A stretch of DNA of 64,000 nucleotides from Eutreptiella sp. 'Long Island Sound 2002' (GCA_964036045.1 OZ038378.1:199392001-199456000); one strand, 5' to 3'; counted from the first letter of the stretch, positions 35,001 to 61,410 are shown. Translations and numbers: made by a program. The notes: generated by a model from the sequence alone, not told the origin.

Positions 35001-38000
35001 GAGCGCCCACTGCACTCACCTCAGAGTTTGAGCAAAAAGTGAAGGGTGTGAAGAGTGAGACTGCAAGCCCCCCCCCCCCCCGCCCGGTGTCCCTTGTCCA
35101 TGCAGAGGTTCACATTGAAGGCTCCCGGAACTAGGCCTCCGGTTAAAAGTGCCCCTACCTAGACCCGTGCCCCGTGCCCCGTGCCCCGTGCCTTGCAGCT
35201 TGCGGGACGACGAAGGCAATCGCTTGAGCCGGCTGCAGCACCGCTGCTTGGGAGAGACAATGGCATCCTGAGTGCCCGTATGGCCCGAGGAGAGAACCGT
35301 GTGTATGGACGTTAGACAAGGCCTTGCTTGTGCAAAGGGGGGGGGTCTACTTTTGATTGCTTATGTCTGCATCTCTGGACTGCTGCTTCTTCATGATGGA
35401 GCACCTCACAGAGCCAAACTGAGTGCTGTTGCTGGACAATGGCAATCTCGGGTCATTGCCACATCAATGGGAATGATGTGTGCACCTTTCCTCACTGGAA
35501 CTTCAGTGGCTTGCAGCACTGCTCCGTGTGGACTGCAACTCAATGTGTGGTCAATCGTGCATCTGCCTGGCCTTCCAAAGTGTCCTGGCGCATATTGCAC
35601 AATGAATAGATGCCTAAACTCTGCGCCTGCAAGTCGACAGTCGTTTGGCAGATGCAAGCATTGACATTGGTACCCTTCGGGGGGCTGGGGTGGGGGCGCC
35701 ACTTCTCCCATGCTCCACTTTCCTCCGCATTGTAGCAAGAATGAATATTGGGACCGAGCTGGTGGGGGAGGGAACATCAGCTATGAATGGTGAGGGACAC
35801 CAATGAGTCACACATTGAAGGCCGTTGACAGAGTGGAATCGGCTTGCAAGTGATCCCCTTCACCACAAGGCCCACTTTCAAGGCTTTTTTGGACTTCTGA
35901 GGGGCCAAAATGCCCCCAAAATGGGCTCAAAATAGGTTGTGGCTGTGGGACAGCATCGGGTAGTGATGTAACCGCAGGACAGGTCGTGATTGCAGTCATC
36001 ACCAGAGGCACGTTCCTGTGAGATAGTTCTTGTGCAATCGAAATCCGAATGCAGACCGACCCCCCCTCCCCCTTGCGCAAGCACAGCCGCAGTCCCAGAA
36101 AACCAAACGAAACAGCGGTTGAATGCCCACCTCATGCTTAGACAAGACTGTGTTTGCGTGGGACATGCACAACAGCAAAGCGTGCGCACCGATGTTCTTA
36201 CCAAACCTTACCCAAAGCATGGCACACTGCGCAAGCGACACCCCGCATATTCTGACTGTCCTCATTGGCTGCCAGGGGCATCAGGCGCTGTGGAACAGAA
36301 GCCCTTTCCAACCTTCCCCCTCATCTTAATCAATTGGACATGCTTGCCCTTTGGGGTAGGCTTTGGGACACGTTTCGCGGCAGGGTTCGGAATGGGTCTG
36401 GGCTTCCTATTCCTTGCCATAAAGCCATCATCCACAATATCCTGCATGAAGTATAGCTCGCGCTCAAAATGTGTGGTAGAATGATGCTATGAACAGAATG
36501 AACAATCACAGTCATGAGTGAGCCCCTATTTCCTGGTACAACCACCTCACGAACACCCAATCTTACAATCGGGACCACACAAACAGCGGTGCCAAAAAAT
36601 CCTGAAAACGGCGGTTAAACGCCCACCTCATGCTTAGACAAAGCCGTGCTTGAGCAGGTGGGGGGGGGGGTAAGTACAAGCCCGCCCCATTCCACCTGTT
36701 CAAAGCACGCTGACACTGTCTGCCCTTTGTGTTTCCACACAGATTGTGTGCGAGAATGCAAGATGACGCAGATGAGAGCCTGTAATCGTCGGAAAGAGGG
36801 TTGAGTCGCATGTTAAACTTGCGTCTGTGTGTATCATCGCCGTTGTGCTGCTGAGACAGCCGCTTTGCATGCATATATTGCATCCCCCCAAGACCAAGGG
36901 GTCTGTGTGGTGCAGCATGTACAGGAAGGCAAGGGCAGCTGCGTCTGCTGTTCAAGGCAGCAACATGACACGGAGTTCCGGTGGTTGGGAAGATCACTTG
37001 CATTCCCGTTGGGTTGAGGCCGGGTATGCTCCTTGTACGCAGATGCCCCCGGTTGACCTGCCACCCGGGGACCCTAGCGTTTGGGGTTGAGGGCATTGGG
37101 GCGCGATGGAAGGCGGCTGGACCGAGATGATGGCCGCAGCGGATCAGCGGACGGTGAACCAAAGGCAAACAAATAGTTGGAGACTCAGGCCAACAGCATT
37201 TGAACAACCAAAAGACGGCGAGGGGGGGCGGGGGGGGCACAGGGCTGAATGACACAGCAGAGCGATTCGAAGAGCAATCAACAGTTACCATGTACCTTCA
37301 ACCTCAAGAAAACGATGAACACCACAGTTTCAGTAGGTGCCTCTGGGCCTCTGGGCCCATACCTGAGCCCATCTATAAACTGGCGTATCCCAGCCCCAAC
37401 AACCCCGCCTCATCCCAGCACTTCCATTCGTAACATGACGACAGAAGCCCCATGTCTGCTGGACATGCATGCGACTGTCGGTGTGATACCCCCCAAAAGC
37501 CACCCGGTGCAAAATGCGAAGATGCCGCAGGACTGTAGGTGCCAGAATGCTTCCTCCCACTACGCTTAGTTGACCGACAACCGCCCCAGTGCCGCAGATT
37601 TCACACGGCGCAGTCCTGTTGGGTCGCCCCCGGGCAATTCCCGCTGTGGCCCCGTGGGCTGCATGCCAAAGGGGACCCCCCCCCCCCAGAGTTTTGCTCA
37701 GAGGGTGGGGGCTGGGGGGGCTGTTTGGGGGGGGGGGGGGGGGCGCCCCGCCCAGGAGACCCTGAATTGTTAGAGGGGCCGAAGAATTTTTTGGCCTAAG
37801 CTGACTTGCGCCGGAGAAAAAATCGAGGTGATTTGGCGGATGGGGGGGGGGTTCGAGGGGGGGGGGGGTGTTAGCCCCCCCCCCCCCCCCCCGGCCCGCG
37901 CAGGAGATGAAGCAAGGCTCTGCACCCCTGGCGCTCCAGATTCAATGGTTCAACACATAGACTCCATAGACCAGCGCGGCGGACATGGCCAGTGCCACGG

Positions 38001-38020
38001 CATGCCCTCGGCCTCTCGTG

Positions 38021-38227
38021 CTACGCCCCAGTGTACGGTCCATCGTAGTAGAATATGCCGCGCTGGTACAAGCGGCCTTTGTGGTACTGAGCTGCTGCAA
38101 GGAACTGGGGCCACCCTGCCCGGTGGTCCCAGGGCACCCAAGCAGCATCCGCTATGGCCAGCAGCCGCGGGAACAACTGATACTCGACCGAGTCCCAGGT
38201 CTTCATGGTCTCAGTCCAAAGTAGCGC
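38021..38227 (-). CDS. GH20 terminal exon 6
   Basis: Acceptor ctgctgcag; ALLWTETM...VEYQLFPRLLAIADAAW to TAG. Joins exon 5 as IIGLQ|ALLWTE. Confidence 0.93.
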   Translation of the reverse strand, partial: ALLWTETMKTWDSVEYQLFPRLLAIADAAWVPWDHRAGWPQFLAAAQYHKGRLYQRGIFYYDGPYTGA

Positions 38228-38514
38228 CTGCAGCAGAGGAGGCAGAGACTTGGCTCGAGATCCGGAGGCGAGAGGGAGGACTGGAGTGCGGCTCATGACT
38301 GTCCTTAAAGTAAACAAGATCGTTGAGTTACACTTGGCTACACGAATGCAGCACTGAATGGCAGTCAACCAACAGCACCCGGCCCATCACCAATAGCAGT
38401 TGGCGGGTCAGTGGCAGCAGCTGTTCACAGCGGACGGCACGGCACTTGGTGGTTACCGGGCAAATTCCACCCATAGACTGCCAACAGTTGGTGGTTACTC
38501 ACTGGCCTTGGGGG

Positions 38515-38750
38515 CTACTCCTGTAGCTCAGTGGTCAGAGGCATCAACAGTAGGCGCCCCAGCCAGGTGTTTGACATCCGGCCTGTCCCACTGATTGCTC
38601 CACGGAGGAGGTCTTGAGAAGGGTCATGTTTCGACCCACAGGGACCGCACAAATCCACCACAAACCCACCACAGGAGCAAGTAGCGCAGTGGTTAGCCAC
38701 TCCATGCTCAGAAATGCCTTGAATGAGGACCCCGGGTTCAATCCCAACTA
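38515..38750 (+). mobile_element. Two tandem degenerate tRNA-like/SINE heads
   Basis: A boxes tagctcagtggt (38524) and tagcgcagtggtt (38682); B box gggttcaatccc (38734). No intact cloverleaf. Confidence 0.5.
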
Positions 38751-40256
38751 CCCACCAATTACTGTGCACTAACAGAGTACGTACATGTATCCCTCCATGT
38801 AGCATGCTACAGGGACGGCAATCACAGGACAGGAAGGCTCATAACCTCCAGCCTTGGGGGTTGATCCTTATGAGCTGTCTTTATGAGATAAAAGGAAAAA
38901 GAATGTCCCTTATGGATAACAGTGGTGCTGCCACAAGGCACAGCTGGTACTGCCCAGTGCATGCCTCGTGTTTAGGTCCCTCCGACCTCCCTTTTGTTCC
39001 CTAAGCCCATCACACCCGTCCTCCCTGCTCTTGTGCTTCTCTCTATGGCTTGCATGCTCATCCTTGCACCAATGGAACCGGCTGTGGTTGGGCCATGTGG
39101 CACACAAGTGATCCCTAGAAACACTCTTCCACAATTAGGAAATGGCCAATCCCATTAGCGCTGTACAAACATGTATATGGGGAGTCTTTGCACTGCGCGC
39201 GCACTGCGCGCTACTTTTAGACTATGTTCCCCCCGAAGAGCCTCCAAGCACACCCCTTGGAAACGCCCTTAGAATTAGGTGACCCAAACTGCCCCAGCTC
39301 AAGAAAGTTGCAAACTACCTTCCCTTCACATAACACACATCATGCACAACTGGAAAAGCCATGAACAGCGCCCCTTGTATGCACCATCCATGGAGCCAAT
39401 CTCATAATCCATATAATGTCCCTTCACCCTTTTGGGCCCCTCGCGATCCCAAATGAGAACATCCGCCGATGTCCCCGGGGCCAACGGACAAATCCAAACG
39501 ATGTTGCCCAAGCTGTCAATGGCAAGATTGTCCCGGTTTCCTCAATAGCACCGGAAGGTTGGGGCCCAAAAGAGGGCGGAAATGCTACATCACCCCTGCA
39601 TTCTCGGGGGTCCCCAACAAAATCAGAACTCAAAACCTCCGCAACGGGTCACCATGATGCCCCTAGGGGCCCCTAGTATCTCAAAGTATGGGTCTCTAGT
39701 ACGGCCAGACGCCCAAATAGTTGCACTGCGCGCGCACTGCGCTTGAGGCGCCCCCATAGACATTTGCCTGCTATGTACTACAAGACCTGCCGCCTGCCAC
39801 ATGTTGGCCATCTTGTGAAACTTGAACTTCTTCTTGATAACGGTGCCTTGGCCTCCTCATGCTCGTATGCATTTGGATTGGTTTTGGTAGAAATGTGGGA
39901 GTTCATTATTCCGACAATTTGGGCTACTTTAGGCCATCCTCAGATTATTTGCCTTGATTTGCACTGATTGACTTGCACATCGCACCCTCCTTCTCCCCAG
40001 GTTGCTTGTCACTGCTGTCCATTGCCAACAGCTGTTGTTGTTGCAGCTACCTCATTTCCTTTCTTCCACTCATTGTGCTACCCTTCTTGCCTTCAACAGA
40101 GCCAGGGTGCCTCGTCTAGTAATGATGTGACCCCCCCCCCCCGCCCCTTGGCGGCAACAATGGCTGAAGGCTTCAGAAAAGGGGGGATGGAACATACATA
40201 TATATTAGGCAATCAAGGGTGTGCTTTTAGGCGGGTGTCCCCAAGATGTCCCAAAC

Positions 40257-40805
40257 CTAACCCCCCTGTTTAATATTCACACCCCATAATTTAACATTCA
40301 CGGCAGAATTACTATTCAAATGTGCCAAGAATGCCGGCCAACGACACATAGCGTGTGCACAACATTGAACGGGACAGGCTCCATTTCCATTTCGAAGGGT
40401 ATTTGAATACCAAAAACAAATTACATCACTATTGAGCAGGAGGTGTGGCCTGTGCAGCCACCTCCTTTTGAACAAATAAGCAATTGGTTGACATAGAACC
40501 TTGCCCTTTCTATGTTGCACATATTTCAAGCCGCACACAAAAGTGAACTGACCGGGGCTATCACACGCTGTACCTTTCTGAAACGTTTTCCTCCAATTGC
40601 AATGCGATACGGCGCGATAAAGTCTGGGCTGCACGGCTGTAGACCGTTGTGTGGACTGCACTACGGCTGTACTTGTTGTACTAATCTGAGAAATATCTGT
40701 CGCTGTAACATCTTGATTTTCAGAAAAGTCCACATCCTCCCCATCATCAAAAATGCAGCCATCAGAGTCACTATCAAATATTTGGACATCAGACAATAGC
40801 TCCAC
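40257..40805 (-). mobile_element. Possible piggyBac-like transposase N-terminal relic
   Basis: Acidic DSDSDGCIFDDGEDVDFSE head, then W...FTFVCGL...PIAYLF. No DDD core seen. Confidence 0.35.
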
Positions 40806-41071
40806 TTGGGTGGGGGAAAATTGGCTTGCGCGGGCGGGGGGGTCGTTGGAGCCCCTTTCCCGGACCCCCCCCCCCTCCTTGGCTCCCGTGACGGGGCCTT
40901 GAAAAAGGTCATAGATGGTGGCAAATAAAGTTGAACTTCCATTGAGGGGGGGGGGGGGGGCAGCAGTGGTGGTATTTATGTCCGGTTAGAGAGAAACACA
41001 CAGTTTGGGTTTTCGTCAGTAGCAGACTTGGATCCAAGCAGTGGGGAGGCCATGTTCACCGAGACTGGCAA

Positions 41072-41228
41072 TAGTCAAATGGTAGTGCAGCGGGCAGTAG
41101 AATTTTTGGTCGGCGGTTCGAATCCCGGTCAGGCGCACATGCAGGCGGCGCCGCCGATGGCATCCGCCTGGCAAGGATTCGAACCGTCGACCACAAAAAC
41201 TGCAGCTGCCTGCGCTACCATTCGACCA
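41072..41228. repeat. Inverted pair of tRNA-like SINE heads
   Basis: 41072-41135 (+; tagtcaaatggtag…ggttcgaatccc) and 41165-41228 (-; tggtcgaatggtag…ggttcgaatcc). Confidence 0.7.
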
Positions 41229-42519
41229 TGGGATGTTGCGGTAGGAATGTGCATCCACATTGCTTGGATCCTTCTGATGCCTTGGGGTATGCTACGTGAA
41301 TGACCCCAAAAAAGGGGGGTATACGACGCCCACGCCTGCACCTCTCTTCGAGGTGATAGGTACTTTACCAAGGGTTCTGTCACAGGAGCCCCATTGCCAG
41401 ACCCCCCCCCCCTCCTTCGGGGGGCTCCCACGACCCCCCCCCCCTCGCGCAAGCCAATTTTCCCCTCGCCCTTGCTCCACTCTTGACTCCGTTGTGCTGA
41501 TAGACCACCCATCATCATCCATGGAGGGTGTGTGCACACGTGTTGTGACCAGAGCGACCTTTGGGGGTGGTCTCGGGCTTTGGGGGGGTTGGGTTGGGCT
41601 GTCGGCCTCATGCAGGAGCCACTCGGGTCCGGGCATCCCTCCCTGCCCCACCATGAGGCTGAACAACCTGACTGTCCGGTCCCAAGGCCAAGCGGACTAT
41701 CAACAGTGACATGGCCTGAGCGGTAGATACCGTTGTCCCGCGTGTGGGCATGTGCACAAGGACTGGAGTGTTACGTGTTGGCCGGTCAGGCACGGGGCTC
41801 ACGGGCGTCTATGGCTGGGCTGCACCCAGCACATGAAGGATCCATGCCGTGCTGGCCCACATGCCTAGGGTTTCGGGGCCCGGGGGTCTCGCCACATCGC
41901 ATCTATTCGTCTGTGCCCCCCGGCCCCTGGGGGTCGCTGGTGCCCCGGTGTGGGCGGCGGTGCTGCTCCTTCGCGTGTTCTGACCTCTTGGCTTACCGAT
42001 TTCGATGCTCGCTGGGCTGCCGTGGATGGTCGTTTCATGGCTGGTCATTTGCACGCTTGGGGCGAGCCATGTCACGCTGTGCTGGAGCCACACCTGATCA
42101 GGGACCTGTGGCTATATAGGAATGTATAAGGGCTGTGTCGAGGCTGCGCAGGGGCTGCAAAGGAGTGTATGTCTGTCCGCGTGTGCCTGTGTAAGAGCTG
42201 TATCAGGGCTGTATAAGGGCTATACAAGGGCTGTGTAAGGGCTGTGTAAAGGCTCTGAAAGGGCTGTGTAAAGGCTGTCTCTCTGTCAGCCCTGGGTCAC
42301 GCACGCTTGGCCCTAGGCTACAAACAGCCGCCCACAGCATGAAATCCTTCAGAAGGTATACCCCCGTGTTGCGCCCTGCTGTGCCTGTGCTGCCTGCCTG
42401 CACTGCCGACCAGGACACCAGACCCCACCCCAGGAACACCGCACAGGCTCTGGCTTTGGGGGGGGGGGGGGCGGGGGGGCTACCCTTGGCGCACCCGCTG
42501 GAACTACCCACAGTTGCTG

Positions 42520-42520
<1 letters not shown>

Positions 42521-42572
<52 letters not shown>

Positions 42573-42620
42573 TGTGTGTGTGTGTGTGCGTGTGTGTGTG
42601 TGTGTGTGTGCGTGTGTGCG
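42521..42620. repeat. (TG)n microsatellite, ~100 bp
   Basis: Direct observation. Confidence 0.98.
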
Positions 42621-44327
42621 CGCCGCCGTTGCAATCGTGGGACCGCCCACTCACGCCGTTGTGTGTGCGTTTCAGTGCAGCAAGCGAGCAGTCGATTGTG
42701 CAGGCACAAAAAGCAGCCATGGGATTGCCTGTCGCTGCCAAAAGCAGAGGGGTGGCCCATCGTCGTTTTGCTGGAGGAGGATGCCCCACTGGGAATCGAC
42801 CCCAGGGCATCCATTCCTTCGTCAAGGGGGTGGACCATTCGACCACCACCAGGCGTACCCTGTCAGTCCTCGGAGCGTATGGTGTGGGCGTGTGTGAGCG
42901 CGCGTTTTGTGCTTGTACTTTGATGCTCGGTGGTGGGGGGGGGGGGGGCTTTAACTCTCCCTGAGCTCCAGGTTACCCCCACAGGCTACTCCCCGGATGG
43001 CAACGCACCTTGGTGACTCAACTCAAATCAGGGGGAAGAGGAGAGTGCAGGGACGCCTGCCGGTGCACTTAAAACCGCCGGCGACTTCCTTCACAAGTTC
43101 GGCACCCCCCAGGTGTTTCGTGCCAAAGGCACTTAAACCCGACACTGTTAATTTACACCGCCAAAGGCCCTGCTGCGGGGCCTTGCACCCAGCACCCAAC
43201 CTGAGCAACCCTCCTCTATTTACCGGCCCCGGTTTGGGAGGACTTGGTAGCCACAGGGGTGGGGGCGGGGGTGGGGGCTGAGTTGAAATGAAAAAGGCAG
43301 AGACCCACGCCAAGTGAGGCAGGCACCATTTGGTGTACCCCCATGGGGGGGGGGGGGCTCAGCCAAGGAGGCAGGCACCCACCCACCGACTGACGAACAT
43401 AAAGGAACCTGCAAAGAAAAAGACAGGCACTCACCCGCCCCTCCCCACCATCTGGGATAGGGTTGGCCCTTCAGTAAACGCCGCAGTAGGCAACGTCTCA
43501 AGGTCCCTCGAAGGGGGGGGATCAACATGGCTACATAACCCTTGCCGTCTCGGGTCTCCAGAGTGGGGAGGAATCCAAGTAGCTACATCACCTTTGCCTT
43601 GTTGGGGCCCCCAAACTGGGAGGACCGAAAAAGGGTGCAAAACCCCTAACCACTTGATACATATGATGCACGCCAAGCCTTTGGAAGGCTCGCATCAGCA
43701 ATAGGCCTTCCGGCTTCTGCTGATCATGCCAGGTTCATAAGCCACGTCTTGTGGTTGATTCATATCTCAAGGGTCAGGGTTGCCAGTTCATCCGAACAGG
43801 TCTTGGGACGCCGGGGACCTGTACCAGGTACAAGGACCTGGTCTTGGGCTTGGCCCACGACCCAACTCTTACCATCGCGGCCTGTGGCTCACCGGCGTTG
43901 TCCTGGCACCGTCCGTGCACTTTGCCACCTCCTCTGAATCCTTCTGTTTTCGTTGAGACCATCTGCATTTTGCCCTTGTCTGTCCTCTTTGTGTGGTTGT
44001 GCGCGCGTGCGTTGCACCCCTTGCGCTGAGACATCGCAGGGCCGGTCATACGTGACACTGGCTTCATTGTTGCTGGTCCTTTGCATATGAAAGGGGGACG
44101 GGGCGGAAGGAGGGAGGAAGGTCCCCCCACCCCTCCCCCCTTGCGTAAGCACGCTGAAAGTCAGGGAAACGACGGGCAGACGGGCCCCCGTGCCTAGACA
44201 AGGCAGTGCTTGCGCAGTGGGCAGGTGCGGGGCGGGGCGAGGGCAGGGAGTGAGCGGGTGGATGGAAAAGAGGAGGGGGGCAGGGGTGCGTGGGTGCAGG
44301 GCCGAGAGAAGGTGAGGGCGCAGGCAC

Positions 44328-44801
44328 CTGCAGCCCGATGATGTTCTGGTGCTGCAGCAGCCCGATCTCCCACGCATTCCGGAGGTGGACCGTCCCCGCC
44401 TGCACCGAGTAGGCGCTCTGGCTGTGCGGCTCCATCTGAAAGAGATCCAGATAACTCTTCGACGTCGGGGCGGCCACCACCGGATACCCGAGGCGCATGA
44501 TCTTGTCGAACGAGGCCTCGGGGGCCCAGTCGCGCCACCAAACCAGCACCGTCTTCGCCCGGTCCGGCGCGTACCCCCGCAGGTCCACGAACGAGTCGTC
44601 CCAGGCGAGCACCCGCTTCTGGTACTCCCCCACAAACGCCGTCAGGCGGTCCAGCAAGTGCCCCTGCAGCCGCTCGTTGTCGGGGATGCCGAGCGCCGCT
44701 TTGACCCGGCGGCCCGGCTCGGCATTGTACGCGGCATCGCGGAACTGCGAGGCCTCGTCTCCGCCCAAGTGCAGGAAGCTGCTGGGGAACAGGTCAAGTA
44801 C
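44328..44801 (-). CDS. GH20 exon 5 (catalytic Asp-Glu pair)
   Basis: Acceptor tcctcag; LFPSSFLHLGGDEA...AWDD...YLD; 158 codons; donor CAG|GTGCCT. Confidence 0.95.
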
Positions 44802-45132
44802 CTGAGGACCGGGGGGACGAGCGAAAGTGCACGCGCGGTCCGGCAACGACAGCGTTCTCGGCCGGATGGCCTTGTGGGTTGACCTGGGGCCACCGTCCGA
44901 TGGCACGCCAACACAGCACTTCAAATTGCTGTGGCATTGTGAAGGGGAGTGATCCAGCCGGATGGCGGTCTGCGTGTGTACGTGCTGTGGTGTTGCCCCG
45001 CCCCCCCCCCCCAATGTCCATCGCCCACCTCTGCCTCTGGAAGCTTAATGCGGCCCTCCAATTGCATACGGTTCCTGGGAAGCCCAATGAAATCAGGCCT
45101 CGAGGGTTACGCTCATCAAAATGCATTCCTAC

Positions 45133-45358
45133 CAGGCCTTTGCTTAGTGATACTGGGGGGGGGGGGTCAAATTGGCCCCCCGGGATTTTGGCTGACCCAC
45201 CCACCCACCCACATCAGAAAATTTTTCCTCAGAAAAAAATGAAATTTTATCAAAGGGGCCCGAACTTGGAGGTCGATTTTAGGTACACAAACTTTTTTTT
45301 GGCCTCTGACCCCCCCCCCCCCCGGTATAGTATCAACCAGCCACTAAGCAAAGGCCTG
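45133..45358. mobile_element. hAT-superfamily MITE (226 bp)
   Basis: Perfect 17-bp TIR CAGGCCTTTGCTTAGTG; exact TSD ATTCCTAC at 45125-45132 and 45359-45366. Confidence 0.92.
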
Positions 45359-46599
45359 ATTCCTACCCCTCTACCTCCAGCACGAGGAGGTCAAAAGCCG
45401 AGCCCCCCTGTGTGGTACGGTGTTGCGTTGATGCAGTGGCATACATTAAGCCCCCGCGTATCTGACGGACCGAACAATGTACGGTACGCCATGCAACAGG
45501 CCGGTATACTGCTTCTGCGGATTGCACGGTCCTGTGCCCAGTCAATGCCCAGCAGCTGCCCCAAACGCTACACTGCGTAACAACAAGTGTCAGAAGTGTG
45601 ATGGTCGGATGGCATCGGATACGCACCAAAGATGCGCGCCCCCCTCTGTATGAGGTACCCGATTGCGGGGGAGAGCTGCCTTGGGGCATTTAGGCATTCA
45701 GGGCACCAACAAGGCCTGAATCCCGATCCGCAACCCAAGCGTAACGGCAGCCAATCGTGCAGCAGCAGACAGTCTTACAGGAGAGCTATTCGGCCCGAGC
45801 CAACAGTTCCAAGTGACTAAAATCAACCCAACTTGCAATATTCGAAATTTGATTGCCAATTTTGCAACGGTTCATCTTGCTTTCACAGTTGTGTCTCACA
45901 ACGGTGCCGCAAACTCTTTAGGGGAGAGTTCTCCACCCGGGTCTGCAGATGGTTTTCTGGATGCTGAGGACATTGATTTTGATGCTATCAGATGTGGCGT
46001 GGACCAACTTCCACCGTCTTTGGACACATTCGAGGCCCGTACCAGACCCCCTTTGGGAGCCCATTGCTGAACGCCGTGGCCCATCTCGTGCGAAACACAC
46101 TCGTAGACCCCCCCCCCGTTATGCCGTGATTGCACGATCCAGGGGCAATGGAGGGCACCGTCATGCTGCCCAACCCCCCGAATATGTGCAACGGCTGCTG
46201 TGCCAAAGACGCCACCAATCGCCCACGGGTCTCGCCTCACCTCCGACAGGGCAGCACCGAGAGTTCACCCCGCGGGCGCCTTAACAAGCATCCGGACCAG
46301 TGCAGGCACAGGTCCTCCCAGCGCCCTACTACTACAGTACCACCGGGGTGTCACACGTGACGGGACTGCCCACTGAGGGGCTGGAGGTCTCCTCGCTTCA
46401 AAACAGGCGGCTCACAACAGATCATACGATTCCGAATCACAACAGATGACCAGGAGCCGCTGCCCCCCTCACAACCGTCACGCAGTAAAAGCTGCTGTTT
46501 GCATTCACTACTACATCGACGGCTGCCCCAGCGGAAGGGTGCGGGCACACCCCATTTGACATTTACCAGACCCCAAGTGGAGCCTGCCGGGCACTAGCC

Positions 46600-46830
46600 T
46601 GCCATGCATCGCACAGCACTAGCAGAGCACTGCACTGGCCTGCACTGCACAGCAATGCACAGCAGGGCCGTGCAATGCCCTGCAATGCACAGCACAACAC
46701 TGCCCTGCACAGCACAGCATAGCACAGCAATGCACAGCACTGCACGGCACGGCCCTGCACTACACTATGTTGCCCTGGGCAGGGCAGTGCAGTGCACTGC
46801 AGGGCGGTGCTGTGCAGTGCTGTGCCATCT
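46600..46830. repeat. Degenerate (GCACA/GCACT)n pentamer array
   Basis: Direct observation; orientation flips near 46780. Confidence 0.85.
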
Positions 46831-47056
46831 CCGAGATAAACCAGATTTGTGGGCCACTTTGCGGGACTCACCATAGAACATGCCCATTTTGTCTTCATTT
46901 GAACGACTGTTGTCCGCACGCTGCACTCCATTTGCTGAAGCGCAGACACGACTCAAGAGCGGCGCATCGCTGCCAGTCCCCTGACGTCCCATGACGACGT
47001 CTGCCACTGGTTCACCTGCGCAGAGCGCAGAGAAAGAGGGAGAGTGGGGGGCCGAC

Positions 47057-47431
47057 CTCCTCCAAAATGTCCCGGAGGTACTGCATGGTCTCATTCGTCG
47101 GGATGACCATGCCGTGCGTGCCGCCCATGCAGTTGGGAGCCCCATGTAGCGCCTTCTGCCCTCCCGGATGTGTACATCCCTCATGCAGCTCCACAGCCCC
47201 GAGGTGGACCGGGGGCGACGCGTGCCGCGCCGCAACAATGAGGGCTGCCGCATGCGCCGGGACGTCAATCTCAGGGATCACATCAATGAACAGGTCCGCG
47301 GCATACGACACAATGTCACGGATCTCCGACTGCGTGTAGTACTGCGGGATCACGTACTCTGTGCCGTTGTACACTGGGTGCCCTGGTGTGGCCGTGCGCT
47401 GGTTCAGGGTGGGCCCACGGCGGCCTCCGAC
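47057..47431 (-). CDS. GH20 exon 4
   Basis: Acceptor ctacacag; VGGRR...YYTQSEIRDIVSYAADLFIDVIPEIDVPAH; 125 codons; donor GAG|GTCGGC. Confidence 0.95.
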
Positions 47432-48170
47432 CTGTGTAGGACGAGGATGAGGGAAGGATGAGAAATGGAAGGAAGGGGTGGCCAAAGGTGCTGGTGCGGG
47501 GTGGTGCGGCCCCTCTCCCGGTTTCACCTGAAGTCTCGCTGCTGTGGTGAAGCATCTGGGGCCCCAAGGAGCTGTGGAATGCAGGTGTTGGTGCAGACTC
47601 TGCCCTTGTGGGGGCACAACGCAGCGCAGCAGCAAGTGATCAGAAGAGAAAGATCTTCAGTCATTGCAAGCTGCACCTTTCGCGGCAAGAGGAGCGTCCG
47701 AATAGAGACCTGAGATGAGGACTGGTTCAATGGTACCTGGAAACCTGGCTTGCCCACTTGAAACACCGGCTTGATCCTCAGTTCATTATTCACCGCACCC
47801 CCTCCCCCCACCCAATGCAGAAGCGCAACTTCTGCCCCTCTCCGCGTGTTCAAGCACATCATCCTGCGGTGCTGGTTGCGCGACGGCCAGCCACTGGTGC
47901 TATGTGAAGTCCACAGCTATGCGACATTGGCGCCATGCATGCAAGGAGGACACGGCCTTTGTGCAAGCATGCAACCCACTAGGTCACTCAATGCAAGGCT
48001 CCAACACCTCACCGTTTGGACTAGAGCGGTGGTGACTTGGTAAATTTGGAGCTAAGTGCAGGGGCAATGATGATTGTCACGGGGGCTTGTGTACCATTCT
48101 CTGACCCAGTTTCACAAAGGTAACAATAGTAATAACCATATGAACCGCAATGAATAATGAAACTTTCCTC

Positions 48171-48297
48171 GCACTATTAAACACTGTGGACCTGTTCTCA
48201 TGCATGCCTTCCCTGAACTTCAAAAGGCCATGTGAACCAATCCAGCGAGTTTTGGGGATGACATGCATGAGGACAGGTCCATAGTGTTTAATGGTGC
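48171..48297. repeat. 127-bp fold-back/MITE with 36-bp arms
   Basis: 48171-48206 and 48262-48297 are reverse complements with 3 mismatches; flanked by CTC on both sides (possible 3-bp TSD). Confidence 0.8.
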
Positions 48298-50109
48298 CTC
48301 ACACTTTTCTGAATTGGCTATATTTAGCCAGATTAGCTAGATTAGCTAGATTGCAAAATTTCCTCGCAAACACATATCTCTCGGGGACATTCAGAACACG
48401 CCAACGAGGTGGGTTTTGGCACTTTTTGCGGGTTTAGCGAACTTTTGGTCTGTTGCGCCAAAATTTCGTCCCTTTGGGGGGTATGTGTCGAAAAAAAGGC
48501 CATTTCAGAAATGTATTGGATTGGGGGGGGGGGGGGGGGTAAGGAGGTCACATTTTTGAGCAAACAGAGCTGCGGACCTCTCACGGCTGACCCGCACCCA
48601 GGCTGCACCACCACGGCGTGCTCTTTTCCGAACCAATGGTTTCTGCGGTGCATCCGGTGAAGCAACTACACGTGGCGTGAATTTGTATGCATACATGGTG
48701 GCTGCCTATTGACAAAAACAAGCAGCAAGCAACACAGGCATCGTCCAAAACGGACGAAAATCTCAAACACGTCGTCGGTACAGCATGCAGACCTAGGGTG
48801 TTCCGAATAGCCCTTTCCAAGGGCTTTCCGAATATACCCCACATACCCTACCTTCGGAACACTAAGCGGGCATAAATGAGGGAAAAATGGCACCAACCCC
48901 CGAAAACCCACCGAGTTGGCGCAATTCCGGTTGTCCCCACGAGATATGCACCGAGATGAGAAGCACACACAGACATCAAAGCACAATGATGAAGTGACCA
49001 CACATTGAAATGTAACAAATGTGTAGGAATTTAGTGATTTTGTCCACATACATCAAAGGCGCTAGACAGTTGTGCATATAATACTCTAGTTTCCTTCGAG
49101 TTACATTGTAGCTTCTATGCCAACCTTGCACGTCTAACATGTCCCAAGGGGATGGATGACCAGCCGGGCAAGTCACAATCAGAAGCTGGCCCCTCAATGC
49201 AATGTCTCAAGTCAGGTAGTCATCCTAGGGGATTGGCCGTGTAGTTGACAACAAGCCCCAAGAGAGCCAGCTATTGGAAGGTGTCACCAATGACAAACTC
49301 CGTGACCATTAGGGGTAGAGAGGGCAGTGCAGCGATGAGTGGCAATGTAGCTAATGCCAAGTCGCAAGAGGGCTACACAGCCGATGAGCAACCCAAAAGT
49401 GGGGAAGTGCTGCACCAAACCCCCACAAGTATTCGCACAAAGGACCAAAGACACAAGAGCAATAATCCAATACAAAAAACAATCCCTCGGATGCTGGGCT
49501 GCAATGACAACACTCAAAAGAGGAGGGTTAGCTAGGGGGTGTGACCTAATTAAAAAACAGACAAATGCAAACCAGAGGGTTAGCTAGGGGGGGGGGGGGG
49601 GTAGCTAGTGGGGGGGCGGGGTTTAGACTAGCCCAAGCTACTTGAGGAGACGGTGTATGACCCCGGGGCTGAGATGATGGGCTATGACAAGATACGCCAT
49701 TTAACACTCTCGAGGACTATGGTGCAGGGTTGGCATGCACGGCATGCACAGCATGGCAGAAAAATCGTGGAGAAGCGGGCGTGGAGGCAACAACAACACC
49801 GGAAGCCCCGATGCAGCTTGTTGCCGTGGTGGTGAGCTACTCAGGCCACACACATGCAAGGTGATGATAGGACACTGCTCATGCTGGACTAGCCCCACAA
49901 TAGATCCTCCCACAATGAGGCTTGGACCTTGTCCAAGCACTCCCACATCATAGGCGAAGGGTCACAAGCCCCTCGAAGGAGGGTCCCTTGCTACCCCTTT
50001 AAAGGGGAAACCTGACAAGGTGGACCCATTAGCCACGATCCCCTCTAACGGGCACCCCCTAGCTCCAACCCACTTGGGACACTGAAGAGGGTCATCCCAA
50101 CAGGTCCAT

Positions 50110-50280
50110 AAGGACCATGACTGGCGACCCCTACTTTTTCCGCTTGGTGCAGTGGTGGCAGGAGCTGCCCCATCCGAATCACACCTTGCCAACTAGGCAG
50201 TGTTCCCTGGTGGCGGGGGCTCACCTGGAGCAAATGGAGGGGGTGTTACACCAGCACTGGCTCCGGCGGGTGAGGGAGAG
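50110..50280 (+). mobile_element. Possible LINE C-terminal relic
   Basis: FFRLVQWWQEL..NHTLPTRQCSLV loosely resembles LLRWLTRL..QSQVSFMELV of the 11.2-11.4 kb LINE. Confidence 0.25.
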
Positions 50281-51574
50281 GACCTTTTCTCCCAGCCATT
50301 AGACCAAATATAGGGTGTCTTAGGACTCATTGGAATCCTGAGACCATGCTCTATCCAGAGAAACTGCGTATTCAGATTTTGCATCGAAAGATTTTGAGAT
50401 ATTTTGTACTTTTGTGGCCCCACGGTCTGGTTCCCGGCCAAAATATTTGAAATGGTGGGAAGTGTTCCATAAAGGCTGATGGGATCCCGGGTAGTGCAAC
50501 CGGTGTCCGTGCAACCAGTATTGTTGGGGGCCGAACACTTGCCATAAAAGCTGAGTAACTGTGCCGGTTGGTATGCACCGGTTTCATCTTCCAGGAATCA
50601 ATTGTTTACATTGCTTGCCACACGCCACTGGACGAGAGTTGGGTAGTTGTCCCAGTGCTCACAAATGCTACTTCTGCCCCTCAGCGTCCCTCCCGTGCCG
50701 GTGCTGGCAATGCTTGACACAAAAGCATTCCCAAGACAGTGAAATCTGAGGGCGCACACCACGCCTGATGTGAAAAATGCATCGCAGGGCCGGGACTTCC
50801 CGATCACCAAGATTGGTGGTGTGCTGCATTTGCAGACATTTTGCCACTGGTTCTTCGTCTTTTCTTTAGGGGGGGACAAAGGACCTACACCAGGGCTCCG
50901 ACGGGCCGACACTTGGTTGGGTGTACGCTCAGGGGGTGGTGCTGTTTCCATGGCGGTAGGGGCCTTGCTGGTACTCACAACGGGGATAACACCTCAGCCC
51001 TTCGCGGCGGGTCGCGATACCCGGTTGTGGGTGTGGTCGAGGGGGGGCTGCGTGCCATCAACATTTGTATTGGGATTGGGGTGGGAGGGGGGGCAGTGGT
51101 GGCTTGCTGACACCCACATCCAAGGCAACACGTCAGCATCGCAGTGGGCGGGCGGGTGTGGTCTGGGGAGGCATGGGTTGCGCTGCATGCGTGTGCAGGG
51201 GGGAGGCGGGGGGGGGGGGGGCTACCCACGCTGGGCCTTCGTCGTCGAAGCACTTCCCCCCGTCCTTGCTACCCCCCCCTCTGTCGCGGTTCGCCCAGTT
51301 CCCCCGCCTCAGTGCAGCTCACTCCGGGGGTTTGGGACCGCTGGTTCCGGGTGCCGGTGGTGGCGGGTGCAACGAGCCTCCCCCGATCCCGCCCGCCCCT
51401 GCGTCCCCTTTGCAGAGGTCACCTGGGCCTTCCCCGTTGGCCTCCGGGTTTACGCACCCGGTCGGTGGCCCCCTGCGGTGTAGAGGGGGGGGGTGGTCAC
51501 TGGGGTGACATTTTGTTGGTGAGTGGAACGTCAGTCCCCCTGCTCGCGTTGAAGGGGGGGGGGGGGGGGGGAAG

Positions 51575-51760
51575 GCTACTGCTTAAGGACCCTGGGGGGG
51601 GGGGAGGGGTGTTTGGGGCCCTGGCCAGCCCCGCTCGACCCCCCAACATCAGAAAAATTTTCCTCCGGCAAAAAATGAAATTTATTAAAGGGGCCGGAAA
51701 TTTGAGGCCGATTTTAAGGACGGTAATTTTTTTTGGCCTCTGACCCCCCCCCCCCAATAG
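51575..51760 (+). repeat. Partial copy of the 45133 MITE family
   Basis: Shared core catcagaaaa(a)ttttcctc…aaaatgaaattt…aaaggggcc…gattttag…ggcctctgacccc. Confidence 0.75.
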
Positions 51761-51817
51761 CCTGAGTGGGGGGGGGGGGGGGGCAAGGCAAGGCAGCGCC
51801 GGGGGGGGGGGGGGGAC

Positions 51818-52246
51818 CTGCACGAGCTCAGGGAATCGCATGATCTCAATGCGCCAGCCCTGATCGTCCGTCAAGTGCCAGTGAAACACGTTCAGTTTGT
51901 GCAGCGCCATGAGGCCCAGCAGGTGTTTGATGTGCTCGACGGAGTAGTAGTGGCGCACGCTGTCCAGCATCAGCCCCCGCCACGCGTAGCGCGGCCAGTC
52001 CACGACGTCCACCGCCGGCACGGCCCACACCGGCGTGTGCCGCCGCCGCTTCCGGGGCGGCAGCGCGAAGGCGTTGAAGGGCAGCAGCTGCCGCAGCGTC
52101 TGGAAGGCGTAGAAGGCCCCTGCCATTGCGGACACCAGCAGCCGGATGCCGCCGGGGGTGACTTGCAGCTGATACCCCTCGGCCGGGGTGGGACGGTCGT
52201 ACATGACGTGGATGGCCCCCGGTGTATTGACTGTCGTCTCATTGAC
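51818..52246 (-). CDS. GH20 exon 3
   Basis: Acceptor ctccacag; EGYQLQV...GAFYAFQTLRQL...DWPRYAWRGLMLDSVRH...KLNVFHWHLTDDQGWRIEI; 143 codons. Confidence 0.95.
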
Positions 52247-52753
52247 CTGTGGAGGGGTAAAGCTGGGGCTTGGTGGATGTTAGACCCCCCCTTGTTAGGC
52301 CCCCCCTTGTTAGACCCCAGGCAACCGGGGGTCCGTGCACACGAAGAAGCCAAGGAAAGGCATGCGGAGGGTTTGCAGGCATTTTGCCCTCCAAGGCGTT
52401 GGGCTACAGCAAGTCCAAGTGCAATCAAACCCAAGACCACAGCAGCACCAGCAAGAATAGCTTAGAATACCACAACCAACACCAAAAACCAACAACAGCA
52501 GCTGGAGCAAGAGCAACAGCAACAGCAACAGCACAGACAAAAGTATCGTCAACAATGAGAGCGGCGATAGCAGAACCAGCACCAGCAGCACCAGCGTGTC
52601 ATTGCCGCCCGTGCCCCTATCGCCCGCATCCGAATCCAAACCCGAATCTAACTCTAGTCCGCACGCGAAACCGAATCGCAACCTCCACAACCCCCGACAC
52701 CCACCCGCCAGATGGCACGCGTGGCACGACGGAAGCACGCCTCATGCCTGAAC

Positions 52754-53006
52754 CGCCAATTGGCACCGGATGAGGGCCTGCAGTTGCAGGGCCATGGGGC
52801 GCGCACGCTCGTCGGCGGCAAAGATCAGGGTCTGCGAGGACAACGTGAAGTGCCCCGGCAGCACACGCAACTGTGCGGGCCTGGGCAGCACGCACAATGC
52901 GGCGTCCAGGGGGCAGGAGGGGTTGGGCATGTTCGGGAGGAAGTAGGAGAAGCGCTGGGGACCGCCGTGGCACCCGGGCCTCAGAGGCGACTTCGCACGG
53001 CGACAC
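52754..53006 (-). CDS. GH20 exon 2 (start of the GH20b/N-terminal domain)
   Basis: Acceptor gtccgcag (phase 2); VLPRPAQLRVLPGHFTLSSQTLI is the typical GH20b 'lP.P..l....G.F.l' pattern. Donor GCG|GTTCAG; an in-frame GC donor at 52747 is the alternative. Confidence 0.8.
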
Positions 53007-53131
53007 CTGCGGACACAAGGGCTCTGCAGAGGGTTGTGACGAGTAATGGGGGGTTGCACAGGGGCTGTGGAAACGTGCGGACCGCCATCGGGAGTTGCAG
53101 GACCGTGTGGGATGAAGGGGAAAGGCAGGGG

Positions 53132-53337
53132 CAGGGCTTCTTTTGAGCAGGGGGGGGGAGGGGGGGAGGGGGTTTTGGACCCAAAACTTGGTGTACCAAA
53201 AATGGCCTGACCAGATTTTCCCAATTGTAAATTTCGTTTTTTCCCACTATGGTCACTTTGGTCTGGGGAGGGGGGGTGGAGGTTTTGGGGGAGGGGTCCC
53301 CCCCCCCTTGGTTTTTAATTATTCTAAAGAAGCCCTG
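53132..53337. mobile_element. hAT-superfamily MITE (206 bp)
   Basis: TIR CAGGGCTTCTTT / AAAGAAGCCCTG; exact TSD GGCAGGGG at 53124-53131 and 53338-53345. Confidence 0.85.
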
Positions 53338-55296
53338 GGCAGGGGCCTCTCAAAAGGGCTTGCGTGACCGAGGCCCTTGCCAACCCGCCAGCTGTCAGGC
53401 GCAATCGTCATTCACACTGCATTGGTTCTGGTGTCCGAAGGGATATGCTATGAACAATCCAGATGAACCTCCATGTATCCACGCGTCACAAATGCAAACA
53501 TATCCACAATCAAACTTCGAGAGAGCACATGGAAAGATGACGATATCTTACGGCATCCAAGGGTGCCTGCATACGACTTACTGTCTGTCCTGCCAACCGT
53601 AGGCACCGTAATCAAGCACTCCTTGGGCTCTCGGTTCCTGTGGCTGTGATAGTTGTGTGTGGGACTATGGCTGAAAAGGAAAGGTGGTAAAATGCGTGAA
53701 GTGTTACGGCTGAAGTCGTGCTCAGTTTCTAGGCATCGAGACTTCTGTGCTGGCGGAGTAAGCCGAAGAGGCTCCCATAGAGTTGGTGATCTGATCCAAT
53801 GTCAGCATCAGAGTCAGATTCCAAAATGTTTTCCCCATGAACGGCACAAAACCTGGAGAGGAAAGCAGATGTCACGGACTTGGGGGGGGGGGGTACCCAA
53901 CCTATATGAGCCGATGTGATCCCCACAACACGCTGATCATTTTCATTTATGTATCACAGGGGAACTTTTTTCCCGGCACATTGCTGTCCGAGTTGCTTTG
54001 CACCCCGATTCAAGCTGGTTTTCACAGTCAACACATGTGGGAACCCTTTTCCTAGTCACCCTCTCCAGCTTTTTCGGGGGTTCGGGGGTTCGGGGGTTCA
54101 CCCCTTTTGTGGCACCCCGATGCTTTTCAGTATCGGCTGCTCTGAGCTCCCCTGAACACACTGGTCGTGGTGCTTGTCCGAGGGTCGGACATGCCAATGC
54201 CCCAAATGACCGCAGGTTCAGCAATGATCGTATCCTCTTGACAATATTCCACGTGCTGTACCCTTTGGACATGGCTGGAAAACCCAGGGCCCAATCAAAC
54301 TTTCTTGGGTGGACCTGGGAGAGTGGGGGCTTCTGCAAAAAGTGACACCATGCGGGGTTCTGCAACCAGCCCCCCCCCCAGGTTTCTAGGCATTTCCCAT
54401 TACAGCAAGTCAGGGAATTCCCTTCCCCTGTTTTCGGGGAGGGGGGGGCATTCTTTACCCGAGGAAACTGTTATTGTCATGCAGCCTTTTGAGGGCCACC
54501 AGCACTCTGAACGGACATTTCATGCGTAGCGTCTCCCATCGGGGTGCACTGCAGGATATTTTGGGGAAATCACAGGGGACTTCACGGGGATACACATGGG
54601 TCCAATGCAAGTCAAGGCCCTACCACGTTGCTTTACTTGTACTGCAGGTGGTCCCCCATCACTTTTGGCAGACATTACTTTCACCTGCTTTTGAGCCCTT
54701 GGTGACTCCTTTGTAACCATACCCTAGCACACGCATCGTGTGCCACCACCACCACACTGAGCAACGCACACTGCTCACTTTCAAGCTAGTTTTGACCTTT
54801 GTTTGTGGGGAGAAGCTGTCATTGTCAAAATTAAGTTCTCACGGTCAAAGAATTCATCTTTATTATATTACTTATGTATGACGCATTTCCACTCTCATAG
54901 TGGGCCCTTTTCAACGCATTACGGGGCTTCACAAGCATACAAACGGGCCAAAGGTGACCAACTGTGGTCCATCAAAACGATGTTTTGACCATCCTAGCAT
55001 TCGATGGTCCCTTTCAAAAAGTCTTTTTTGCCCCAACCCCCCCGCTGACTATCGACCCAAAGCCCTACTCTGGAATATGCACAATGCACCATAAACGCTT
55101 CTAGAGGGGGGTGAAGGGTGCCTGCTACCATGGCTTTTCATCGCCATTCAAAAGCAGTCAAATCCACGGTTATGCAGAATCCCGCAGGATTGTGGAGGAT
55201 TGTAGAGAGCTGTAGAGGGTGATGGAGGTTGGTGTGGTGTTGGCAAGGTTTATCCAGGGTTTTGGTACGGCTTTCGAGAGGGTGTGGAGGCTGTAC

Positions 55297-55658
55297 CATG
55301 GAGCTTCGTCTTGACAATAGCGCTCTTCATCCTCCGGGTTGCGCTTCGGTTTGGGGCTTGGCCTTGCTGGCGGACTTGGTGTCGCAGATGTGGGGTTTTG
55401 CGCGTGAGCTTGTGAGGACACATCGGGAGGGGGGTTATGGTCTACGGGTTGCTGGCGACTCATCTGAGGCTGAGGCTGCGCGGACTTTCTCGTGGGATCC
55501 AGCGCAGGGCGCTGCAGTGGAGCACCTCGCACTGGGGTGGCTTGGGCTGTGCTATCCGGCACAGGGTTGGCGCGCCACAGCCTCACATGGAGCAACGCGA
55601 AGGTGACCATTATGCAAATGAGAAAGACCCGCCATGGCAATCGCGGCTTGCGAGGCAT
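55297..55658 (-). CDS. GH20 beta-N-acetylhexosaminidase exon 1: short basic tail, TM/signal anchor, Pro/Gln-rich stem
   Basis: MPRKPRLPWRVFLICIMVTFALLHVRLW followed by a P/Q/S-rich linker. Donor TG|GTACAG (phase 2) joins exon 2 to give Trp. Confidence 0.72.
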
Positions 55659-55694
55659 TGGGGCCGCAGGCCACGAACATTCAGCAAAAGAGGG

Positions 55695-55730
55695 CTGGAA
55701 CATGGGGCACACATGAGGACAGGAGGGCGT
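55695..55730 (-). promoter_or_regulatory. Pyrimidine-rich 3' splice acceptor (…ccatgttccAG) 36 nt upstream of the GH20 ATG; candidate cis- or SL-trans-splice site
   Basis: Minus strand reads ccctcctgtcctcatgtgtgccccatgttccag|ccctct…ccaATG. Use of this site is inferred only. Confidence 0.4.
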
Positions 55731-57081
55731 CTGATGGGAGGAGCAGCAGACGTGCGAACATAAAATGCCAGTGCCAGGGCTTGGCGGGCTTTCACTTCCG
55801 GGGGGGGGGGGGGGTCGATAGAGCCCTCCGGCCGGACCCCCCCCCCCAAAAGGGCTCAATTGACGGGACCCCCCAAAACCAACCTGGGGACGTCTGTGGT
55901 TCCAATGACGGTGGTATTTGTGTTTCAGGACACAAGGCCCCCGGTCAATTCTGGCTACACATGTATGTAGTGCCTCACCATGGCCTATCATTAGAACCAC
56001 ATGAGCTGGGGGGTGCCTAACAAGGGGACAAAATCAGAAGTGCATAGCCCCTGCCAAAAGTGGCTCCTAAGCTTCTTTTGAATAGTGACAATGGTGTCTG
56101 TCAATGGAGCTCTTTTCCCGAACCCTCCCCCCCCCCCAGTTTTTGGCTCTCTATCGACCTCCCCCCCCGAAAGTGAAAACCCGGCGCCCCCAGAGCCTAA
56201 TCTTACATCTGAGCAAAGCCATAGAAGCCCACTACATGCGCTCCCCCAAGCCGTGGAACCCCCCCCCCCCCACTTAAGATACCCCCCCCCCTACTTATCG
56301 TACACCCCCTGGGAAGCCACGAAAATCAAGTACCTAAGGGACCCCCCTTTGGTGAAACACCTCATAAACAAAGCAAGACAACGTTCTATGCCCCCATTGG
56401 ATAAACTGCCCAGATCAGAACCTTCAGAACCGTCACCCACATCATCACCATTGACAACAAAAGAGTTCAATGCAATGTCTGCCATGTCTAGAACTGCAGT
56501 ACCACTATGGCAAGAACTGCAAACGTAAAATCTGCAATGTGAAGGACACACCCCCACTTATTGTACCCCCCCCCCCCCCGGACTTATCGTAGCCCCCCTT
56601 AGGAAGCCAAAAAATTTCAGTTCGGGATCGTACCCAGGGGTACGATTATGGGGGCTGGGGGAGTTTACACATCAGCTGGACAACGGCATTGGTCACGTGT
56701 GCATGGTAGCAGCTGCTGCCCCACCATTCAGCCACCTGCCCGCGCCCTGTTCTGTGGGCAAGGGCAAATGGAACAGTTCCGTTGCCAGACCTACAGAAAC
56801 TCGCACCGTCTTTCCTGAGGATGGTATATGCGCTCGCTCGTTAAGGCAATTGGCAGTACAGACTGGGGCCTTTTTTTTTTTCACGGGCAGCTTCGTCTTT
56901 TATCTTTTCCATTTTTGAGCCCAGCGACCAACGGGCGTTGGCCGCTGCTGATTCACTGGGCACCTCAAATCAGCATCGGGGGAATCAAGGCTGGTGTCGG
57001 TTCACAAATAGAGCATTTTAAATTACTTCATTCCACGTGCTTGCACGCTCACTCACTCACTCGCTCATGCACACGCGCACG

Positions 57082-57114
<33 letters not shown>
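57082..57114. repeat. (CA)n(GA)n compound microsatellite next to the donor of the 26-kb intron
   Basis: Direct observation. Confidence 0.95.
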
Positions 57115-57120
57115 GGAAAC

Positions 57121-57510
57121 CTCTCCAGGCAGAAGCGTTGGATAATGCGGCTCCCAGACCTGATATCCCACTGTCAGTCTGTGCCTGCTCAAGAACCGCA
57201 AAATGTGTGCCACGCGGCGCAGAGCCTCTGCATCGCGTGGCACGACCTGGTTCCACGTGCCCCACACGTTCTCCCAGGCCACGTACCCCGCGGCATTGAA
57301 ATAACAGTAATGCAGCGCGTCGGTGCGGTTGCGGGCCCAACGGTCGCTCACATGCGTCATGCGCTGCCCGTACGGGCTGATCCATTTCGCACGGTCTACG
57401 CCGGGGGCGACTGCGTACGTCGTCTGGGCCGTAGTGTTGTTGGTGGCGGCCTCCCAGTATCCCCAGCCCACCGTCGTCCAGCCCAGCGACGCGAAAGTCA
57501 CATTGCTGCC
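57121..57510 (-). CDS. FGE-domain protein, internal exon B
   Basis: Acceptor gtgtcag, donor GAG|GTTTCC; 130 codons: WGYWE...DRWARNRTDALHYCYFNAAGYVAWENVWGTWNQVVPRDAEALRR...WEPHYPTLLPGE. Phase 0 at both ends. Confidence 0.87.
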
Positions 57511-61212: not shown

Positions 61213-61410
61213 CAGCGCCATGGTCGCATAGCCCCCGCCCTCGGCCTCTGCGGCCATGCCTCTGGCCGCGAAGGCCCGCGGCACGTACTGCATCGTGTCG
61301 CCGTTGAAGCCGTCGGCCCCCACAGCCTCCAGCAGCGCCGCGAGCGCGGCGGCGTCCCCACGCGCCTCAGGACGGGTCCCACTGTCCCACGGGTTGTACG
61401 GCAGCAGCAC
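61213..61410 (-). CDS. FGE/sulfatase-modifying-factor-domain protein, internal exon A (glycosidase-like N-terminal region)
   Basis: Acceptor ctcgcag, donor CTG|GTATGC; 66 codons: VLLPYNPWDSGTR...GADGFNGDTMQYVPRAF. From recall, this resembles the N-terminal region of long bacterial FGE-family proteins. Confidence 0.85.

Follow-up and report, generated by a model that had tools for sequence, protein, structure and literature searches.

The stretch analysed here is a 64,000-nucleotide window of the genome of Eutreptiella sp. 'Long Island Sound 2002' (G000:C1:199392001-199456000), lying inside a 2.28-Gb assembly, and all gene coordinates given below are on its minus strand. The window carries one protein-coding gene inside another. 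The outer, or host, gene joins a TIM barrel to a beta-sandwich and an FGE-like domain, and its third visible intron encloses a complete six-exon gene of glycoside hydrolase family 20 (GH20) on the same strand. Both gene models had been put forward in an original prediction for this DNA and were confirmed here by homologues and by a GH20 paralogue on contig C12. Exons were searched individually and were concatenated in scripts solely for checks of frame, stops and junction neighbourhoods. The host features were as follows.

G000:C1:199458100-199458336 (extended coordinates 66336-66100), minus strand: host exon A, beyond the window, located by tblastn of homologues
61213-61410, minus strand: host exon B, part of the TIM barrel (VLLPYNPWD...ATMAL), located by tblastn with P0018, P0017, P0009 and P0007
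57121-57510, minus strand: host exon C, end of the TIM barrel (GSNVTF...PTLLPGE), with 558 homologues
30938-57120, minus strand: host intron 3, 26,183 nt, GT-AG, phase 0, enclosing the whole GH20 gene
29729-30937, minus strand: host last exon with the beta-sandwich, the FGE-sulfatase domain and the stop codon (Pfam PF03781, E = 5e-34)

The 558 homologues of exon C were recovered by a HMMER search of the representative library, and the open frame ending at 57121 (the N-domain exon) gave no Pfam match. A C-terminal PF03781 domain was present in 8 of the 10 long N-domain homologues (701-918 aa) scanned with Pfam, and the PF03781 match in the host last exon covered profile positions 9-255 of 255, above the cut-off. 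tblastn with the homologue P0018 placed residues 189-338 at 57576-57130 and residues 344-721 at 30937-29735, the latter with 44% identity; residues 338 and 344 thus fall at 57130 and 30937, and the protein is contiguous across the 57121/30937 join. P0017, P0007 and P0025 mapped in the same manner as P0018, and P0009 gave the same two blocks, separated by an additional insert of ~95 residues. The whole architecture was also found intronless in one stretch of a 68%-GC bacterial-type metagenome contig, with a single frame change near the middle. Exon B is bounded by a CAG/G acceptor and a G/GTATG donor, both phase 0. The exons on both sides of the 26-kb intron therefore belong to one gene. The N-domain exon and the FGE exon are each single copy in this genome.

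The predicted host product is a protein of about 750 aa from a widespread family in which a GH13/GH27-like TIM barrel is followed by a beta-sandwich and then by an FGE-like domain. The family is large: its members number over 3,300 at E <= 1e-40 and come from bacteria, haptophytes and other algae, and the N-domain exon also had homologues in Symbiodinium. Database annotation describes its members as FGE-family proteins or iron(II)-dependent oxidoreductases. The AlphaFold2 model of P0018 (pLDDT 90.6) showed a (beta/alpha)8 barrel up to residue ~325, a beta-sandwich at 344-423 and an FGE fold at 476-727, and Foldseek with this model returned solved FGE structures, GH13 amylases and a GH27 alpha-galactosidase. 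A formylglycine-forming role of the host FGE-like domain is putative. As modelled, the N-domain is an uncharacterised glycosidase-like domain fused to the FGE-like domain, and intron 3 is positioned at the linker between barrel and beta-sandwich. The N-terminal 340 residues of this FGE-family group were covered by no Pfam model.

The coding sequence of the nested GH20 gene is 2,106 nt long, encodes 701 aa and is free of internal stops. The gene was resolved into the following exons.

55297-55658, minus strand: GH20 exon 1, with the ATG at 55658-55656, the signal anchor RVFLICIMVTFALLHV and a Pro-rich linker, ending ...CQDEAPW
52748-53006, minus strand: GH20 exon 2, N-terminal half of GH20b, sharing 46% identity with the C12 paralogue (its residues 100-187)
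51818-52246, minus strand: GH20 exon 3, end of GH20b and catalytic positions 1-58 (Pfam PF02838, PF00728)
47057-47431, minus strand: GH20 exon 4, catalytic positions 56-155 (Pfam PF00728)
44328-44801, minus strand: GH20 exon 5, catalytic positions 154-295 with HLGGDE, donor at 44327 (Pfam PF00728)
38021-38227, minus strand: GH20 exon 6, from ALLWTE... to the stop TAG at 38023-38021 (Pfam PF00728 positions 315-346)

The GH20b and GH20 catalytic domains (PF02838 and PF00728) scored above the Pfam cut-off on four exons, and the catalytic Asp-Glu pair of GH20 is present within HLGGDE in exon 5. The N terminus consists of a basic stretch followed by a hydrophobic anchor, likewise found in the paralogue. 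Exon 1 ends in a phase 2 donor, TG/GTACAG (GT at 55296), and the exon 1/2 join APW/CRRAKSPL corresponds to APWCHRKRKPL of the C12 paralogue. Exon 2 has a phase 2 acceptor and a GC donor following CAG, and exon 6 begins after a phase 0 CAG/G acceptor. Judged from its domains and reading frame, the nested gene is an intact predicted beta-hexosaminidase of family 20. Intron 2 (52247-52747) is apparently of the GC-AG type (CAG/GCATG), a choice that gives the exact length of the paralogue, and an alternative GT donor lies 6 nt upstream of the GC donor. A start of GH20b at VPKPWINL, late in the exon 1 open frame, combined with a nonconventional intron was also considered and was rejected, as the C12 paralogue shows a separate exon 2 and the GT donor at 55296. 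A recent duplication of the nested copy was ruled out as well, since the nearest GH20 paralogues, including that on C12, were merely 50-60% identical. Exon 1 was single copy in a search of the organism's own genome, which also gave no retrocopy bearing a spliced leader (SL).

The splice phases to which the original prediction had drawn attention held at each site. The host donor GT (57120-57119) directly follows a complete codon (...PGE) and is phase 0, and the AG whose G is at 55695 stands 36 nt (12 open codons) before the GH20 ATG in a frame compatible with that donor. In GH20, every acceptor from exon 3 to exon 6 is phase 0 and only intron 1 is phase 2. The GH20 exon 5 donor (GT 44327-44326) and the start of the FGE exon (30937, preceded by CAG) are likewise phase 0. 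Overall, the intron phases were 0,0,0 in the host and 2,0,0,0,0 in GH20, giving seven of eight introns in phase 0, and all eight had the exon context (A or T)G/G. The background was estimated by counting AG/G sites by phase in the host and GH20 coding sequences, which replaced a spliced-alignment survey of GH20 paralogues that was too ambiguous. Phases 0, 1 and 2 held 42, 8 and 5 such sites (76% in phase 0), a bias that arises because codons beginning with G are frequent in these two coding sequences. Under this AG/G model the probability of at least seven phase 0 introns among eight was 0.40, compared with 0.018 at a generic phase 0 rate of 45%. For the 12 codons upstream of the ATG, the probability of an open frame was 0.71 at the local base composition, and that of one open in-frame AG was 0.24. 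The phase 0 shared by the host and nested splice sites is incidental.

The same phases had been taken in the original prediction to suggest chimeric isoforms, with one transcription unit giving proteins made of N-domain and GH20, GH20 and FGE, or N-domain and FGE. If such isoforms were functional, the shared phase would have been selected. All junctions required for these products are indeed open and in frame, and the position of the host intron coincides with a domain linker. However, the phase match is predicted by codon context and so gives no information on selected chimeras, and a single canonical exon-skipping event was recorded in Euglena gracilis among 28,337 introns and 18,643 mRNAs (Gao et al., PMC11170887). 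A GH20 and FGE fusion would cut the GH20 catalytic domain short before ALLWTE, removing its final 68 aa with profile positions 315-346, and an N-domain and GH20 fusion would place the membrane anchor mid-chain and separate the host barrel from its beta-sandwich. In addition, no GH20 domain was listed among the 10 Pfam-scanned long N-domain homologues or the best 120 matches of the FGE exon. Functional chimeras of this kind are very improbable. The part of the original prediction that concerned gene models and phases stood, the part that joined N-domain to GH20 or GH20 to FGE found no support, and its alternative, the release of GH20 mRNA by SL trans-splicing, gained weight from the data that follow.

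A count of the 24-nt euglenid SL exon on both strands, with at most one mismatch, gave approximately 5,460 copies genome-wide and 0 in the reversed-sequence control. Each of the three copies inspected continued from the SL exon into a GT intron with conserved flanks, as in an SL RNA gene. The copies were scattered along chromosomes and did not form one single array. Part of one published source (PMC3621762) reports this same leader for Euglena and Eutreptiella, and on its leader sequence the source genome is that of a euglenid. With SL RNA genes this abundant, SL trans-splicing is the default in this organism and no exotic alternative. In E. gracilis, 11,921 outrons were described for 18,643 mRNAs, so that about 64% of the mRNAs are SL trans-spliced (Gao et al. 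2024, PMC11170887). The 3' splice site of these outrons consists of a C-rich pyrimidine tract followed by CAG and is indistinguishable from the acceptors of cis introns (PMC11170887); the supplement of that paper does not list outron sequences.

The interval between the host donor and the GH20 ATG contained the following elements.

55695-55696, minus strand: candidate 3' splice or SL acceptor AG noted in the original prediction, first exon base 55694, 36 nt before the ATG
55731-55732, minus strand: candidate 3' splice or SL acceptor AG, first exon base 55730, with an open in-frame stretch of 72 nt up to the ATG
55774-56193, minus strand: dispersed repeat resembling a miniature inverted-repeat transposable element (MITE), ~420 bp with ~45-bp inverted ends, found by DNA search of the same genome
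57060-57114, minus strand: (CT)n(GT)n microsatellite with many GTGTG motifs, read directly, beginning 6 nt into the host intron

Five AGs occur within 150 nt before the GH20 ATG, and two of them combine CAG with a pyrimidine tract, so that two 3' splice sites of the outron type, at 55730 and 55694, lie upstream of the GH20 start. At 55730, 16 of the 20 upstream bases are pyrimidines (10 of them C), and at 55694 the count is 14 of 20; CAG follows in both. The 36 nt from 55694 to 55659 (12 codons) read PSFAECSWPAAP without a stop and in frame to the ATG at 55658. As far as splice-site sequence indicates, the 5' end of the GH20 mRNA is likely to arise by SL trans-splicing at 55694 or 55730, and SL release of GH20 from a longer precursor is plausible.

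With moderate confidence, we favour the reading that the locus is a same-strand nested pair whose mRNAs mature separately, with the GH20 5' end made by SL addition and the shared phase incidental. The host mRNA would be formed by removal of the entire 26,183-nt intron. The GH20 mRNA would receive its leader at the C-rich-pyrimidine CAG that lies either 36 or 72 nt before its ATG, wherever its precursor was initiated. Both genes would then be expressed, and in-frame host-GH20 or GH20-FGE chimeras would be rare by-products at most. The in-frame layout means that a mis-spliced product would carry no premature stop, and this is a consequence of layout and not of design.

A bolder version of this scheme is an intronic operon, in which GH20 would have no promoter and the host pre-mRNA would give either host mRNA or an SL-spliced, polyadenylated GH20 mRNA. 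SL addition at 55694 or 55730, together with polyadenylation after 38021, would destroy the upstream part of the host message, and the two outputs would be mutually exclusive and coupled. Euglena expression is reported to be controlled largely post-transcriptionally (PMC6366073), which agrees with such an arrangement. It is also favoured by the common strand of both genes, the abundance of the SL machinery and the indistinguishable 3' splice sites of Euglena outrons and introns, as well as by the unique sequence between the MITE-like repeat and the ATG, which amounts to only 116 nt. However, work by Conrad and colleagues in Caenorhabditis elegans is said to have found that a 3' splice site with a 5' splice site upstream on the same RNA is cis-spliced and not trans-spliced, and a preference of this kind would favour chimeras rather than release. 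The E. gracilis draft-genome paper, moreover, judged extensive polycistronic transcription unlikely in that genome, which is sparse. Overall, an intronic operon is possible but doubtful.

A different account concerns the host itself, which could be split or decaying, with the N-domain and FGE exons no longer joined since GH20 entered the intron and the FGE exon either expressed alone through an SL acceptor of its own (ATG at 30646) or silent. The FGE exon is preceded by a strong C-rich tract, so that its acceptor could take an SL, and the first two ATGs within the host last exon (30646 and 30535) keep to the reading frame and follow no out-of-frame ATG. Some algal transcript open reading frames (ORFs; 430-490 aa) span just the beta-sandwich and FGE domains, and the transcript searches described below, with the N-domain and the FGE exon, returned no Euglena host transcript. 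On the other side, the four visible host exons are all open, share 37-52% identity with homologues and have exact GT/AG at the homology boundaries. No frame contains an ATG within the first 291 nt of the last exon, where the conserved beta-sandwich part is encoded. Lying upstream of the first ATG, this part would be untranslated on its own and is translatable only if spliced to upstream exons, which argues that a host mRNA is made, or was until recently. The host is furthermore a single-copy gene, and the genome would hold no other source of its function. A split or decaying host is improbable.

Several observations weigh against the separate maturation of the two mRNAs as proposed, or against the phase argument beneath it. 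Downstream of the donor at 57120, a host transcript presents the GH20 acceptors well ahead of the FGE acceptor at 30937; a first-come logic of splicing would favour the GH20 acceptors, which a host mRNA has to bypass. An out-of-frame ATG at 55680 stays in the GH20 leader with either acceptor and is suboptimal for translation. The chance that both CAGs nearest the GH20 ATG would be in frame is approximately 0.06, which is mildly unusual, and the 76% phase 0 estimate was derived from these two genes only, published phase data for Euglena being sparse. Finally, the protein collection that was searched does contain transcript contigs of other algae. GH20 exon 1 gave no match in a length-limited word search of it. 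The FGE exon gave just the genome's own ORF and homologues of at most 55% identity in two length-limited word searches, the second reaching 833 aa. The host N-domain exon gave no Euglena transcript-derived protein in the full HMMER representative search, in which the genome ORF alone was at 100% identity. Thus, the searches run returned no transcript-derived Euglena protein for either the host or GH20 exon 1.

The nested layout itself is noteworthy and the phase match is its ordinary consequence. The match follows from the positions of introns relative to codons and gives no evidence for fusion proteins. The interest of the locus lies in an intact multi-exon gene placed on the same strand within an intron about three times the reported Euglena maximum, the longest published Euglena introns being 8.2 kb and 9.2 kb. 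In mouse and human, nested genes share the orientation of their host almost as often as they oppose it (PMC11694760), and a section of one source (PMC3192792) indicates that nested genes can provoke host intron retention, exonisation and cryptic polyadenylation. The present pair resembles animal host and nested gene pairs in that a complete protein-coding gene lies within the long intron of another gene, whereas it occurs in a protist, a euglenid that employs SL trans-splicing. No publication on nested genes of Euglena came up in a literature search.

The sequence before the GH20 start codon shares with the SL outrons of E. gracilis (PMC11170887) a C-rich pyrimidine tract and a CAG shortly before the start codon, and the genomic setting shares thousands of SL RNA genes. 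The putative outron here differs in lying within the intron of another gene and downstream of a competing cis donor. Likewise, as in the SL-resolved polycistrons of kinetoplastid units and nematode operons, an SL acceptor could cap a downstream unit that has no promoter of its own. In contrast to those polycistrons, GH20 lies inside a host intron and not past the host 3' end, the host last exon being 7.1 kb beyond the GH20 stop, and both genes contain cis introns. Read-through or conjoined-gene chimeras also show in-frame combinations of donor and acceptor between same-strand neighbours, whereas here such combinations are known from frame compatibility alone and a GH20 and FGE product would truncate the GH20 barrel. 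The locus suits two questions: what makes the spliceosome of a euglenid pair a look-alike acceptor with a cis donor or with SL RNA, and whether nested genes are freed from host transcripts. If the intronic operon were true, SL trans-splicing would be what lets euglenids tolerate nested genes on the same strand.

Among the remaining features of the intron, the GTGTG units of the microsatellite equal the 5' splice-site consensus reported for Euglena (GTGTG) and so offer many cryptic donors. A first-look search gave 2,604 candidates for the MITE-like repeat. The 40 that were scored were full-length copies at 84-92% identity, and among these the repeat ends gave short reverse-orientation matches to each other. 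Runs of G or C (10-20 nt) with short conserved motifs recur at the GH20 flanks (37600-38020 and 55800-56600), and these homopolymer-rich flanks are probably parts of dispersed repeats. Pfam gave no match for ten further open frames located within or near the GH20 introns and in the remaining host intron. Elsewhere in the genome, an intronless GH20 locus (G000:C8:36041264-36042283, L001) contained a 551-aa open frame that matched the whole catalytic profile (E = 2e-100), unlike the remaining GH20 copies of this genome, which are all split by introns. Recent horizontal acquisition, an origin as a retrogene or contamination could account for this locus.

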